A DNA stretch of 64,000 nucleotides, taken from contig NIVC01000539.1 of assembly GCA_002269645.1 (NCBI GenBank), positions 124,001-188,000 on the forward strand, read 5' to 3'. Shown piece by piece: positions 28,820 to 36,173 of this stretch (the first letter of the stretch is position 1; the number at the start of each line of letters is the position of its first letter). The notes below the pieces were generated by a model. The model had not been told where the DNA came from and did not search any database. It saw only the letters and a program-made list of their open reading frames with translations. The DNA is from Macrostomum lignano. Lineage: Eukaryota. Made by a program: the position numbers and the translations under genes.

Positions 28820-29116
28820 TAGCATTTGCCCCGAGCATTGAGGTGATGTCGGAGCCCAGCTCTCATCTCAGCCTGTTGCCAGGCAGCTGGCGTCATCAGC
28901 GAGACTCGCCTCCCATTGATGAGGAGGAAATTTACCAGAGAAGTCGCGGCCCCAGCTCTAAGAATCCGCCATCCGTTCGGGCCCGTTACAGGTGGCGCGA
29001 ACGGCTGCTGCACGTGATCCGGTCCAATGTTGCGCAGATCATCCTGTGCGCTCTGGTGCTCATCGATGCGGTCATTGTCATAGCTGAGATCATCCTGGAG
29101 ATCAAGGCCATCACCA
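28820..29116 (+). CDS. HVCN1: Hv voltage-gated proton channel exon: S0 and S1 (5' boundary uncertain; in-frame ATG at 28846)
   Basis: WRERLLHVIRSNVAQIILCALVLIDAVIVIAEIILEIK aligns by eye with human Hv1 S1 (LVVLDALLVLAELILD; D112 and E119 equivalents). Donor a|GTGAGT at 29117, phase 1. Confidence 0.85.
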
Positions 29117-29184
29117 GTGAGTTCTTCGCGGACTGGGGCGCGGGATGAGCCTGGTCTGGCTCAGTGATTTGTTTGTGCTAACCG

Positions 29185-30052
29185 ATAGATGAAGGAATAG
29201 AGAGGGTTGCTAATCTAGCCAACATCATGATTGATGAAGGAATAGAATGGATTGCTAATCTAACCAACATTATGATTGATAAAGGAATAAATGGATAGCT
29301 AATCTAGCCAACATTATGATTGATGAAGGAATAGAATGGATTGCTAATCTAGCCAACATCATGATTAATGAAGGAATAAATGGATTGCTAATCTAGCCTG
29401 CATCATGATTGATGAAGGAATAGAATGGATTACTAATCTAGCCTGCATCATGATTGATGAAGGAATAGAATGGATTGCTAATCTAGCCTGCATCATGATT
29501 GATGAAGGAATGGAATGGATTGCTAATCTAGCCTGCATCATGATTGATGAAGGAATAAATGGATTGCTAATCTAGCCTGCATCATGATTGATGAAGGAAT
29601 GGAATGGATTGCTAATCTAGCCTGCATCATGATTAATGAAGGAATAAATGGATAGCTAATCTAGCCTGCATCATGATTGATGAAGGAATGGAATGGATTG
29701 CTAATCTAGCCTGCATCATGATTGATGAAGGAATAGAATGGATTGCTAATCTAGCCAACATTATGATTAATGAAGGAATGGAATGGATTGCTAATCTAGC
29801 CTGCATCATGATTGATGAAGGAATGGAATGGATTGCTAATCTAGCCTGCATCATGATTGATGAAGGAATAGAATGAATTGCTAATCTAGCCAACATCATG
29901 ATTGATGAAGGAATAAATGGATTGCTAATCTAGCCTACATCATGGATACAGGAATAGAGTGAATTGCTAATCTAGCCTACATCATGGATGCAGGAATAGA
30001 GTGGATTGCTAATCTAGCCAACATCACGGATGAAAGAATAGAATGAATTGCT
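29185..30052 (+). repeat. 44-45-bp minisatellite (atgattgatgaaggaatagaatggattgctaatctagcctgcatc), about 19 copies
   Basis: Direct tandem repeats within the Hv intron. Confidence 0.95.
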
Positions 30053-30909: not shown

Positions 30910-31461
30910 ACCTGAATGGATTAGTGATGTGTCAGTCCAAATGGTTCAACCATGGACCTGAATGGATTAGTGATGTGTCAGTCCAAATGGTTCAACCATG
31001 GACCTGAATGGATTAGTGATGTGTCAGTCCAAATGGTTCAACCATGGACCTGAATGGATTAGTGATGTGTCAGTCCAAATGGTTCAACCATGGACCTGAA
31101 TGGATTAGTGATGTGTCAGTCCAAATGGTTCAACCATGGACCTGAATGGATTAGTGATGTGTCAGTCCAAATGGTTCAACCATGGACCTGAATGGATTAG
31201 TGATGTGTCAGTCCAAATGGTTCAACCATGGACCTGAATGGATTAGTGATGTGTCAGTCCAAATGGTTCAACCATGGACCTGAATGGATTAGTGATGTGT
31301 CAGTCCAAATGGTTCAACCATGGACCTGAATGGATTAGTGATGTGTCAGTCCAAATGGTTCAACCATGGACCTGAATGGATTAGTGATGTGTCAGTCCAA
31401 ATGGTTCAACCATGGACCTGAATGGATTAGTGATGTGTCAGTCCAAATGGTTCAACCATGG
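30910..31461 (+). repeat. 46-bp perfectly homogeneous minisatellite, 12 copies
   Basis: Unit acctgaatggattagtgatgtgtcagtccaaatggttcaaccatgg; no variants seen. Confidence 0.95.
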
Positions 31462-31528
31462 ACGACTTTATTCAAGCAGCTGGACTGGAGTCTACTCGTA
31501 ATCTAGGATTCCACATGGTTCAACAAAA

Positions 31529-31925
31529 ACTCAGATTCCGAATCCCAACTCAGATCCCGAATCCCAACTCAGATCCCGAATCCCAACTTAGATCCCAAAT
31601 CCCAGCTCCGATGCGGAATCCCAACCCAGATCCCGAATCCCAACTCAGATCCCGAATCCCAACTCAGATCCCGAATCCCAACTCAGATCTCGAATCCCAA
31701 CTCAGATCCAAAATCCCAGCTCCGATGCGGAATCCCAACCCAGATCCCGAATCCCAACTCAGATCCCGAATCCCAACTCAGATCCCGAATCCCAACTCAG
31801 ATCTCGAATCCCAACTCAGATCCAAAATCCCAGCTCCGATGCGGAATCCCAACTCAGATCCCGAATCCAAATTGAGATTCCATTACAAACACAAAATTCT
31901 ATATCCGATCCCAGATCCCAACTCA
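31529..31925 (+). repeat. 19-bp minisatellite (cccgaatcccaactcagat) with 114-bp higher-order period
   Basis: Variant block cccagctccgatgcggaatcc recurs about every 114 bp. Confidence 0.9.
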
Positions 31926-31959: not shown

Positions 31960-32549
31960 GCGAGAAGGTGGCCCTGGAAGGCGCCTTCGTCAAGACCGCC
32001 AGCTTCGTGAACGAGACCTTCGCAAACTGCCTGTCGGAGCGCGGCCTGCTGCTGCCCGAGTTCACCCAGCGCCTGCTCTCGTCGCCGCAGTTTGCAGAGC
32101 GCCTGGCCTCCAGCATGCTGAACATCCTGCTGGCCCTCGGCGGCCACAACTCCAGCTCGGTGTGCAACGTCACAGGGGTCGCCACGGCGGTGGCTTCGGC
32201 GGGCTCCGCGGCTGCGTCCTCCTCGCCGGCGGCGGCGGCAGCGGCTGCTCGTTCGTCAACAGCTGGACGACCGGCGTCGGCAACTGCCGCTGGACTCCGG
32301 TTGAGACGGGCGGCAAGCGGGGGCGGCAGCAGCGGAGGCGGCGGCGGCGGAGGCGGCAGCAGTGGAGGCGGCGGCGGCGGAGTTCGAATATTCAGCAGCT
32401 ACCAGCAGGATTACAGCCACGCGAAGCTGCTGCACGACGTGTCCTCGGTGCTGCACTACGTCAGCATCGGCATTCTGGGCCTGTTCGTGCTGGAGGTGGC
32501 ACTGAAAGTTGCCTGCTTGGGACGGAACTTCGTGAGGGAAAAATTTGAG
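31960..32549 (+). CDS. HVCN1: Hv exon: very long S1-S2 loop, S2 and S2-S3 linker
   Basis: Acceptor gacAG|gc (phase 1, matches 29116). Open frame ending VLHYVSIGILGLFVLEVALKVACLGRNFVREKFE, matching human FHYMSITILVFFMMEIIFK...KFE (H140, F150, E153, K157, E171 equivalents). Donor GAG|GTAAAG. Confidence 0.9.
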
Positions 32550-32612
32550 GTAAAGTTTTACTTGTCTGTTAGAATTTTAGCTCACTAGAGAGGACTGGGG
32601 AATAGCAGGGAG

Positions 32613-32799
32613 AGCAGACAGGGAAACAGCACGGAGACAGGATGTGGGGAGGGGAACAGACAGGGAAACAGCACGGAGACAGAATGTGGGGAGGGGAACA
32701 GACAGGGAAACAGCACGGAGACAGGATGTGGGGAGGGGAACAGACAGGGAAACAGCACGGAGACAGGATGTGGGGAGGGGAACAGACAGGGAAACAGCA
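32613..32799 (+). repeat. 42-bp minisatellite, about 4.4 copies
   Basis: Unit gagacaggatgtggggaggggaacagacagggaaacagcacg. Confidence 0.9.
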
Positions 32800-33329
32800 T
32801 TTAATTTGGCCAAATTAAGCTTCCCGAGGAAAGGTATGCGGAAAATCAAAAGAACATTTAGTGAAAAAAGACTAGCTAGGACTAAAAGTCTTTTATGACT
32901 GACTGTATGGAAACAAGGTTCAAGGTGGCCAGGGGGGTGTTTTGGCAGGAAGTGCGTGCAGGCGCAAACAGGGGGGCTGTCGGTCATGGAAGACGAGCAG
33001 GGAAATTCCATTCTGCCCAGTCTGGTCCGGGAAGGGGAGGGGTACAGAGAGACAGAGAGGAGCGGCGTAAGAATGCCGAAAGTAAAAGTAATGATAACAG
33101 GGCCTTGGACACGGACCTGTGCCGTGCGTGTGCCAAGGAGTGGCCTTGAGAGATAGAAAGCACTCGGAATTCTACAGGGGTGATGTGGACCAGTGAAACA
33201 GGGGCTAGTGAAACAGGATATTCATACTTGCGGAGCCAAGTTGGGGTGGCGGCATGTTCCAGCGAATATTTCTGCTGGGACCACCCACCCCGCGATGCTG
33301 AGGTACTAATTACTGACTGATTGTGTGAT

Positions 33330-33560
33330 TGTGGCTGCATGAATCAGCACTGAGTGTGTGATTGTGCCTGCGGGACTCAGCACTGAGTGAGTGAGATTGT
33401 GGCTGCGGGACTCAGCACTGAGTGAGTGAGATTGTGGCTGCGGGACTCAGCACTGAGTGAGTGAGATTGTGGCTGCGGGACTCAGCACTGAGTGTGTGAT
33501 TGTGGCTGCGGGACTCAGCACTGAGTGTGTGATTGTGGCTGCGGGACTCAGCACTGTGTG
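33330..33560 (+). repeat. 35-bp minisatellite with internal ctgagt/actcag inverted repeat, about 6.5 copies
   Basis: Unit ctgagtgagtgagattgtggctgcgggactcagca. Confidence 0.9.
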
Positions 33561-33620
33561 TGACTGAGAGACAGACTGCAAAAGAGATTTACGACCCAAT
33601 GTGACTGTACACCCGCGCAG

Positions 33621-33744
33621 ATCGTGGACGCCACAGTGATCCTGATCTCATTCGTGGCAGACATCGTGTTCGTGAAGCTGGAATCCACAGAGGTGTCTGT
33701 CATGGTTCTGTTCCTGCTGTGGCGCATTGTCCGCGTCATCAATG
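33621..33744 (+). CDS. HVCN1: Hv exon: S3 and S4
   Basis: Acceptor cgcAG, phase 0. IVDATVILISFVADIVFVKLESTEVSVMVLFLLWRIVRVING matches human ILDAVVVVVSFILD...LRLWRVARIING (D174, D185, W207, R208, R211, N214 equivalents). Donor g|GTGAGT. Missed by the ORF track. Confidence 0.9.
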
Positions 33745-34664: not shown

Positions 34665-35317
34665 CAGGGACGTCGCCACCGGGGGGACATGTCCCCCCCC
34701 CCAGTAAAAGCTATGGGGGGACATGCCAATGCTTTGTCCCCCCCCACCCCACCTTGTTGACCCGTTATGGAAATCAATAATTTTGCTTCAGGGCGACAAA
34801 ACATAGCGCCTGCGGCACCAAAATGAGCGCCTGCGGCACCAAAATGAGCGCCTGCGGTGCCAAAATGAGCGCCTGCGGCACCAAAATGAGCGCCTGCGGC
34901 ACCAAAATGAGCGCCTGCGGTGCCAAAATGAGCGCCTGCGGTGCCAAAATGAGTGTCTGCGGCGCTAAAATGAGTACCTGCGGCGCCAAAATGGGTACCT
35001 GCAGCGCCAAAATGTGTGGCCAAAATGAGTACCTGCGGTGCCAAAATGAGCGCCTGCGGCACCAAAATGAGCGCCTGCGGTGCCAAAATAAGTGTCTGCG
35101 GCGCTAAAATGGTGCCTGTGGCGCCAAAATGAGGGCCTGTGGCGCCAAAATGAGTGCCTGCAGCGCGAAAATGAGTGCCTGCGGCGCCAAAATGATCGAT
35201 GACAACACCGATTTGGAAATAAGTACATGTACAATAGGAATTTTGTCATGTAAATGTACATGTAGAAGTCTGGGCTTTGTCCCCCCCCCCACCATAAAAT
35301 CCATGGCGATGTCCCTG
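34665..35317. mobile_element. hAT-type MITE with internal 21-bp tandem array (gcgcctgcggcaccaaaatga, about 34805-35190)
   Basis: TIRs CAGGGACGTCGCCA / TGGCGATGTCCCTG (13/14). No clean TSD (ACACCCTG vs ACTGTGTG). Confidence 0.65.
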
Positions 35318-35423: not shown

Positions 35424-35539
35424 GCCTGATGATGCACGAGAAGCAGAGGGACGAATTTCGAATTCAACTGCAGAAGCGAGCCCGGCGAATGTCCGAGATG
35501 AAGTGCGACACCCTGGAGACAGAGCGCGACCTTCAAGAG
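35424..35539 (+). CDS. HVCN1: Hv exon: C-terminal coiled-coil start
   Basis: Acceptor ctgacAG|gc (phase 1, completing the Gly of ING). GLMMHEKQRDEFRIQLQKRARRMSEMKCDTLETERDLQE. Donor GAG|GTTTGT, phase 0. Confidence 0.75.
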
Positions 35540-35910: not shown

Positions 35911-36094
35911 GTTTATATCATTAAAAAATTTCGATTAAAAGCACTAATTAGAGTTTTGCCCGAACTTTGCTTTCTCATCAAAAAATATGACTAGTCAAAA
36001 AAGTCAAAAAAGTTCTTGTTTAGTTCTCAAACTTGAGAGAGATAATTTGACAATAAGATTCACTTCAGCCTAACCCTACACCGGATTACCGCAG

Positions 36095-36173
36095 AAGCAG
36101 ATCCTGTTCCTGGAGGAGCTCTGCCGCGAGCTCGGCGGAAGCGAAGATCAAATCGGCAACTGCAAGCCGCGGT
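36095..36173 (+). CDS. HVCN1: Hv exon: end of coiled coil (KQILFLEELCRELGGSEDQIGNCKPR)
   Basis: Acceptor ccgcAG phase 0, high GC3, heptad-like; donor t|GTGAGT phase 1. Read-through would give CELL-stop at about 36187. Confidence 0.7.

Follow-up and report, generated by a model that had tools for sequence, protein, structure and literature searches.

A Macrostomum lignano proton channel of the HV3 type with a candidate furin-like cut site in its S1-S2 loop

The window analysed here, 64,000 nucleotides of contig NIVC01000539.1 of Macrostomum lignano (positions 124,001 to 188,000), carries on its plus strand a gene that, judged by its sequence, is a voltage-gated proton channel (Hv) of the 'unconventional' HV3 type, having lost the first arginine of S4 (R1) and having a large loop between the helices S1 and S2. 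We regard it as evenly balanced whether the R-L-R-R sequence in this loop is a cut site for a furin-like convertase, which would give a channel made of two chains. The long S1-S2 loop is itself already known in spiralian Hv channels; the membership of flatworms in the R1-less class and the conserved basic motif within the loop appear to be undescribed before.

The top database match of the encoded protein was UniProt A0A1I8F401 (P0001), annotated as Macrostomum lignano 'voltage-gated hydrogen channel 1' and 94-97% identical. This entry differs from the window only in short frame-shifted patches (EFTSACSRRRKRLASS; LLCAHCRVING), corresponding to window positions 32060-32110 and 33714-33740, one of which makes a spurious RRRKR while the other destroys the S4 motif; the patches have the appearance of indel errors left by an older assembly. 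The best sequence matches in PDB were human Hv1 (5OQK, 1.5e-17) and a mouse Hv1 chimera (3WKV, 4.5e-16). The alignment to 5OQK fell into two separate blocks, S1 and S2-S4, leaving query residues 94-251 unmatched where the human chain runs from 52 to 57. The first-pass annotation had put the loop at about 160 residues against fewer than 10 in human Hv1, and the measured 158 residues (91-248), set against human residues 52 to 57, bear this out.

The residues on which Hv function depends were all in place, namely D74, H256, F266, E269, D290, D301, W321, R322, R325, and N328. Among the human equivalents, we take D112, H140, E153, D174, D185, W207, R208, R211, and N214 to correspond to window residues, with R205 as R1. 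D74, in LVLIDAVIV, aligns with the aspartate of human VVLDALLV (D112), the selectivity filter in S1, and this column is nearly invariant in 56 relatives. Hydropathy peaks were found at the S1-S4 regions only, as in a four-helix voltage sensor without an S5-S6 pore domain. Exons 4-5 encode a long helix into which S4 passes directly. Instead of the canonical S4 signature RxWRxxR, the protein reads L319-L-W-R-I-V-R325, so that R1 is replaced by leucine while the tryptophan, R2, R3, and the asparagine are kept. Leucine was also found at R1 in all cestode and trematode orthologues. Of the Pfam families only Ion_trans matched, at 23.8 bits and just below the curated cut-off of 25 bits, and the S1-S2 loop searched alone against Pfam gave no match. 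A Foldseek search of PDB returned only channels containing a voltage-sensor domain, none of them significant (E at least 1.1), and nothing similar to the cap formed by the loop.

Homology searching was complicated by the composition of the loop. A search with the raw protein was flooded by Ala/Gly low-complexity words (2 matches), after which the tract was masked, and an alignment-based third search was flooded again (7 matches), yet uncovered a Macrostomum paralogue, P0177. When 1.84 billion representative proteins were searched with a profile, 150 Hv relatives were obtained, and their S1-S2 loops were measured with two sub-profiles. Among these representatives RLWRxxR mostly occurred with loops of 0-6 residues, and the R1-less motifs LPWR, VPWR, LLWR, and LIWR with loops of 82-574 residues. 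The nearest relatives of the window protein were those of cestodes and trematodes, followed by Lingula and by nemertean, annelid, and bryozoan proteins (Tubulanus, Owenia, Bugula). In a neighbour-joining tree of 117 core columns, from which the R1 and proline columns had been removed, all 60 R1-less sequences fell into one clade with three intruders; support was modest, as Macrostomum was inside the R1-less clade in 69% of 200 bootstraps and the exact split was recovered in 1/200.

Large S1-S2 loops have been documented in molluscan Hv paralogues (PMC10911540, PMC10377628), as the first-pass annotation had noted. 'Unconventional' HV channels were described as having a very large S1-S2 loop together with an xPWRxxR motif and as originating in an early lophotrochozoan; the proline is found in molluscs, brachiopods, and phoronids, and proline-less versions in Annelida, Bryozoa, and Nemertea, while for Platyhelminthes only long S3-S4 loops in Schistosoma were mentioned (PMC10377628). 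In the window protein the residue directly before the S4 tryptophan is leucine, and in this the gene belongs with the channels of large loop and no proline that are reported for Annelida, Bryozoa, and Nemertea (PMC10377628). Neither furin, convertases, loop proteolysis, nor glycosylation is mentioned in PMC10911540 or PMC10377628, and the searchable library yielded nothing relevant on Hv1 and furin, on HV3 and molluscs, or on proton channels and Platyhelminthes.

Exons were placed by translation, inspection of splice sites, and tblastn with human Hv1. Exon 1 (28846-29116, plus strand) contains the ATG, the cytosolic N-terminus, and an S1 that includes D74 and aligns to human Hv1, and it ends in a phase-1 donor (A/GTGAGT; a slash marks a splice junction or a presumed cut). 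Exon 2 (31960-32549, plus strand; acceptor gacAG/GC, donor GAG/GTAAAG) is 590 nt in one open frame and encodes the full S1-S2 loop together with S2. S3 and S4 follow in exon 3 (33621-33744, plus strand), with the S4 motif at 33714-33734. Exon 4 (35424-35539, plus strand) encodes the post-S4 helix (LMMHEKQRDEFRIQLQKRARRMSEMK..), with which a C-terminal coiled-coil-like helix begins; the latter continues in exon 5 (..KQILFLEELCRELGGSEDQIGNCKPR; about 36086-36172, plus strand, with bounds that are approximate and taken from tblastn). All splice sites are canonical and the phases compatible, the codon of S91 being split A/GC and that of G329 G/GC. The window holds exons 1-5 only, and conserved C-terminal exons seen in the paralogue P0177 are not in it.

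Since the frame of exon 2 is free of stops (0, against 5 and 1 in the other two frames), GC content at third codon positions (GC3) reaches 0.94 where the loop begins, no internal donor-like site (at least 7/9 matches) was detected, and the single acceptor-like site inside the exon (32090) is out of frame, we consider exon 2 to be coding and used whole. An internal in-frame intron was rejected on the same two splice-site results, and with it the internal acceptor that, as had been pointed out beforehand, would have removed most of the loop. The loop is an old one. The gene of Taenia crassiceps has its three introns around S1, S2, and S4 at the codons and in the phases found in the window gene, and the loop and S2 likewise lie within a single exon. 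A taeniid orthologue (P0005) has the full loop on intron-free mRNA contigs from three RNA-derived sequencing runs, and P0024 was likewise found on intron-free RNA-derived contigs that include the loop.

Exactly 158 residues separate the end of S1 (..EIKAIT) from the start of S2 (HDVSSVLHY), and all the elements listed for them in the first-pass annotation were present, including three sequons, two cysteines, a helix (here as a prediction), R-L-R-R, and an Ala/Ser/Gly tract. AlphaFold2 performed poorly with 6 sequences (mean predicted local distance difference test, pLDDT, 52.9) and was usable with a 56-sequence alignment (73.6). In the latter model the voltage-sensor core exceeded a pLDDT of 90, residues 172-231 were below 50, and the S2 helix began at 236. 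The structured part of the loop (31960-32138, plus strand; residues 91-150, pLDDT 74-88) comprises a helical extension of S1 to about residue 118 and the helices 122-131 and 133-150, the last being FAERLASSMLNILLALGG (pLDDT 74-81), and contains the sequon NET108 (32010-32018) and C114 in NCL (32028-32030). Immediately 3' of the last helix lies a cluster of NSS154, C159 in VCN, and NVT160 (32148-32174; pLDDT below 50 for residues 153-160), followed by an Ala/Ser/Gly-rich low-complexity tether (32169-32381; residues 161-231) that is predicted to be disordered. RLRR (32298-32309; residues 204-207) is followed by A-A-S-G and stands 41 residues before S2 as a candidate proprotein-convertase site. 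The outer end of S2 and S2 itself (32433-32549) carry H249, H256 (the counterpart of human H140), F266, and E269. The loop as modelled thus begins with a helical stalk or cap and goes on as a disordered tether, which carries RLRR.

No 19-residue window of the loop reached the hydropathy of a membrane span (none above 1.4); an additional span in the loop was therefore rejected, and because no segment is hydrophobic enough to cross the membrane, the four-helix topology stands. The loop consists largely of alanine (29), serine (26), and glycine (25 of 158). Taken alone, three or more sequons would be expected in it by chance with P = 0.057, and R-x-[KR]-R with P = 0.027-0.042. The window loop by itself is thus only mildly unusual, and the weight of the argument comes from the comparison with its family.

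For this comparison the loops of 66 R1-less, long-loop Hv representatives were used, the window protein included. R-x-[K/R]-R was present in 33 of the 66, where shuffling of each loop gave an expectation of 2.4, and the 39 sites in total compared with 2.6 expected, a 15-fold excess (z 24). The cytosolic N-terminal, proximal C-terminal, and distal C-terminal regions of the same proteins, used as a control, showed only 2.3-3.0-fold, so a general clustering of basic residues does not account for the excess in the loop. The motif is oriented, with 25 forward-only against 3 reverse-only sites. P1' is alanine or serine in 22/33 sites (p 3e-10), P2' is alanine, glycine, or serine in 23/33 (p 1e-8), and histidine is enriched at P5/P6 (12/33). 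The distance from the site to S2 has a median of 30 residues (interquartile range 22-44, full range 12-188), and in a MAFFT alignment of 56 sequences the motif was the sole aligned island, the loops being unalignable elsewhere; its R, K/R, and R were present in 29, 42, and 40 of the sequences, respectively. The Macrostomum site, AAGL-RLRR/AASGGG, lies inside this family pattern.

Carriers of the motif include a chiton, five bivalves, three gastropods (among them Aplysia californica with AcHV3), the bryozoan Bugula (RNKR/AAG), and transcript-derived contigs; two sites per loop occur in AcHV3, P0060, P0033, and P0043. None of nine R1-bearing long loops had the motif. Among the molluscan subtypes the site was absent from all 8 sequences with LPWR[IV]LR and present in 16 of 22 with LPWRVIR, which suggests inheritance within paralogue lines. 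The alignment of the bryozoan-like pair P0024 and P0026 runs through both cysteines and the RxKR/AA site. A second R-x-[KR]-R of the window protein, R-A-R-R (residues 347-350, 35478-35489, in LQKRARR), belongs to the post-S4 helix in the cytosol and does not vary among the aligned flatworm relatives. Being on the wrong side of the membrane it is no convertase site, and it explains part of the 'forward' motifs in the cytosolic control.

The family loops contained 216 sequons where 107 were expected (z 11.7), and none of the 66 proteins was without one, whereas the cytosolic parts of the same proteins showed no excess (178 vs 172 expected). This is good evidence that the loops face the lumen and are selected for glycosylation, and the Macrostomum loop is extracellular by topology and very probably glycosylated. 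Conservation of the cysteine pair, which had been proposed as a check, did not materialise; 30 of the 66 loops have no cysteine at all, so that it is not a family trait, and P0177 has no second cysteine. A cysteine pair around an amphipathic helix occurs in the same order in Macrostomum, Bugula, and P0024, and in the last two it aligns residue by residue.

Furin-type convertases prefer R-x-[KR]-R with small residues at P1' and P2'. RLRR/AASG (residues 204-211) has this form, and the proposal that R-L-R-R is a convertase-type motif gains from its agreement with a strongly over-represented, oriented, and position-constrained motif of R1-less spiralian Hv channels in a segment predicted to be disordered. 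The site is expected to be luminal from the topology of Hv channels and the loop-specific excess of sequons, and flexible from a pLDDT below 50 (172-231), both of these being predictions. Because an oriented R-x-K/R-R/(A/S)(A/G/S) is retained in a disordered luminal loop that evolves freely elsewhere, we consider a convertase site to be the most economical reading. Exon 2 provides the 158-residue extracellular insert in one piece, of which the first 60 residues are predicted to form a helical stalk or cap, with S1 prolonged above the membrane and two short helices, and the following approximately 85 residues a disordered, probably N-glycosylated Ala/Ser/Gly tether, partly derived from a tandem duplication and bearing R-L-R-R/A-A-S-G. 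On this reading selection has maintained the site in half of all R1-less spiralian Hv channels, RLRR is the form it takes in Macrostomum, and a furin-like proprotein convertase would cut after R207 as the protein moves through the Golgi. The presumed product is one chain of the N-terminus, S1, and the glycosylated cap, and another of S2-S4 and the C-terminal helix, which would stay together in the membrane.

The first-pass annotation had also envisaged shedding of a glycosylated ectodomain. This does not follow, since the loop is anchored by S1 and S2 at its two ends, and a cut at the single site would leave two membrane-anchored chains with nothing shed. Its other suggestion, a zinc-sensing cap, was not supported either; a His-rich zinc-sensing loop was rejected for Macrostomum, the loop having 2 histidines against 13 in AcHV3. 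The outer extension of S2 bears a series of histidines (H249 and H256, 32433-32458; family consensus H..H..LH..S) that is conserved across the R1-less channels and could, without involvement of the variable loop, serve as a zinc or pH site.

Several observations weigh against cleavage of the Macrostomum protein. The expectation that the motif would be conserved in orthologues held for about half of the wider clade (33/66) and failed in the closest relatives, as no cestode or trematode orthologue has a strict R-x-[K/R]-R, and P0177 lacks RLRR, the second cysteine, and most of the tether. RLRR moreover sits within a low-complexity tract, where its chance of occurring is about 3-4% and where the composition by itself would give A-A-S-G. 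A BLASTP comparison of the Macrostomum and Bugula proteins matches them from S2 onward only and the loops are not significantly alignable, so homology of the site rests on its position and its frequency in the family; residue-level homology of the Macrostomum cysteine pair or site with Bugula is accordingly not claimed. Finally, the family members are related, and the motif counts are therefore not independent events, and many of the database proteins are gene predictions.

These observations lend themselves to a different explanation, which we consider unlikely but the strongest of the alternatives, namely that the loop is a fast-evolving glycosylated spacer and the Macrostomum RLRR a chance product of a slippage-prone Ala/Ser/Gly/Arg tract, uncut even if relatives are processed. 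The probability of 0.027-0.042 in the window loop, the 30-nt tandem duplication that adjoins RLRR, the absence of tether and motif from P0177 and of the motif from all parasitic flatworm orthologues, and a P1'-P4' match expected from local composition are all in keeping with it. However, the site lies 41 residues before S2, within the interquartile range of the family (22-44), and with half of the clade having the site where about 4% would be expected, retention is a better prior than coincidence. Less likely still is a basic motif that acts without proteolysis, as a tethered cationic element reaching the acidic outer vestibule of the R1-less sensor or as a contact for glycosaminoglycans or lipid head groups. 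Its restriction to R1-less channels (0/9 R1-bearing long loops) and the histidines at P5/P6 (12/33), a possible pH- or Zn-sensitive patch, would suit such a role, but the strict orientation (25 vs 3) and the small P1'/P2' residues are the preferences of furin-type convertases, and disordered spacers of variable length, 12-188 residues from S2, suit cleavage better than precise docking.

It is very improbable that the exon is mis-modelled or the gene a decaying copy, and that the insert of 158 residues is not in the working protein. The gene model does rest on genomic DNA, the gene lies within extremely repeat-rich DNA, and the Ion_trans match (23.8 vs 25 bits) is just below the cut-off; against this, the splice sites are canonical, the phases fit, and the functional residues are all intact, the intron positions are common to Taenia, GC3 is 0.94 in the loop with no in-frame internal splice option, and loops of about this size are found in orthologues and paralogues, some of them on mRNA contigs. 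Returning to the convertase site, we give the Macrostomum protein an about even chance of being cleaved, and the family-level reading, taken as a full claim, a slightly lower one. The analysis establishes the gene model, the family assignment, the anatomy of the loop, and the family-wide excess of motif and sequons; that the loop is glycosylated or cut, and that a cut would alter gating, is inferred.

The family-level reading, which we hold tentatively, is that R-x-K/R-R/A-A is an ancestral and selected convertase site of the whole R1-less clade, that these channels mature into split voltage sensors cut between S1 and S2, and that this processing, by single cut or two-site excision, sets their leak-like, weakly voltage-dependent gating; Macrostomum would have kept the site, and the parasitic flatworms would have lost it and evolved Cys-rich loops. 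Voltage-sensor domains are usually seen as single-chain four-helix units, and a conserved protease site between S1 and S2 would, if true, make this the first voltage sensor built to be cut, and cleavage could help to explain the leak and the poor voltage sensing of HV3-type channels. The HV3-type class is extended to flatworms, covering the free-living Macrostomum and the major parasitic groups, and from the loss of R1 one would predict that flatworm proton channels, those of medically important parasites included, leak or depend only weakly on voltage, as AcHV3 does. Both new points, the flatworm membership of the R1-less class and the basic motif, are directly testable on AcHV3, which has already been expressed and conducts. 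If there is no cleavage, what is left is one more, ordinary member of a channel subgroup already described.

The second Macrostomum gene, P0177 (UniProt A0A1I8GWV1), is 62-83% identical to the window gene per exon and 62% in the core of the loop, and keeps the helical core (RGLLLPEF.Q.LL..PQFAE.LAS.M) and NSS. The public models of P0177 and P0034 (A0A1I8GWV1, A0A1I8FSE..) are chimeric, each having been joined to a B-box-type gene that lies downstream. The orthologues of cestodes and trematodes are between 412 and 964 amino acids (aa) long. Among the cestode loops (P0002, P0004, and P0005), one paralogue group has 10 cysteines in about 130 residues, with three CC doublets, and a second group has 4-5. 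In the parasitic flatworms a disulfide-rich domain seems to have taken the place of the tether with its basic site.

The window as a whole is eukaryotic DNA dense in minisatellites. Arrays occur in every intron of the Hv gene (29184-30052, 30910-31463, 31528-31868, 32607-32799, 33316-33562, and 34805-35195), that at 30910-31463 consisting of 12 perfectly identical copies of 46 nt. Open reading frames upstream of the gene (1-28800) were rejected as genes, all of them being translations of tandem-repeat arrays. A satellite array of at least 27 kb (36675-64000), strongly skewed to C over G and built of units of roughly 54 and 115 nt that match at 92%, starts approximately 500 nt past exon 5, and since the conserved C-terminal exons of the paralogue are not in the window, it probably sits inside an intron of the Hv gene. 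Within exon 2, a 30-nt unit is tandemly duplicated (32309-32382, plus strand; 2.4 copies, 90% match), yielding the tract GGSSGGGGGG twice, right after RLRR; the tether of the loop is lengthening by replication slippage.

Among known channels, AcHV3 of Aplysia californica is a protein of 980 aa with an S1-S2 loop of 299 aa, and it conducts protons when expressed (Chaves et al. 2022, PMC10911540). It corresponds to P0128 of our set (Aplysia LOC101855857, 980 aa, loop of about 290 residues). AcHV3 and the window channel have in common the missing first S4 arginine and the very large S1-S2 loop (299 and 158 aa), and in both the aspartate of S1, the tryptophan of S4, R2, and R3 are kept and S4 is followed by a helical C-terminus; their loops likewise share a basic R-x-K/R-R site (RFRR and RRKR/SS in AcHV3) and several sequons. 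They differ in that AcHV3 has LPWR where the window has LLWR, and in their numbers of loop histidines. A large C-terminal domain is known of HV3, and the C-terminus of the window channel past exon 5 falls outside the window.

Human and mouse Hv1 resemble the window channel in the four-helix voltage sensor without a pore domain and in the equivalents of the key residues. In contrast, human Hv1 has about 5 residues between S1 and S2 instead of 158 and an arginine, R205, at the R1 position where the window has leucine, and its H193 has no equivalent in the window. A known cleavage of Hv1, giving Hv1Sper, is in the cytosolic N-terminus and not in the outer loop (cited in PMC10911540). The orthologues of Taenia, Hymenolepis, Mesocestoides, Fasciola, Clonorchis, and Schistosoma share the LLWRxxR-type S4 and have loops of 122-258 aa with sequons, and intron positions are identical in Taenia, the species checked. 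Cestode and trematode orthologues are 52-58% identical to the window protein in the best local alignment, which covers about one third of the query, and their loops differ from that of Macrostomum in being Cys-rich (up to 10) or long and His-rich and in having no Ala/Ser/Gly tract.

A parallel to the proposed processing is provided by the epithelial sodium channel ENaC, in whose alpha and gamma subunits furin cuts R-x-x-R in an extracellular loop anchored at both ends, the pieces staying associated while gating changes. HV3 channels resemble ENaC in the doubly anchored loop with R-x-x-R sites, two of which are found in ENaC and in some HV3 loops, whereas fold and family are unrelated, and excision of an inhibitory tract is demonstrated in ENaC while Macrostomum has a single predicted site. 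By analogy, relatives of the window channel with two sites would excise a peptide as ENaC does.

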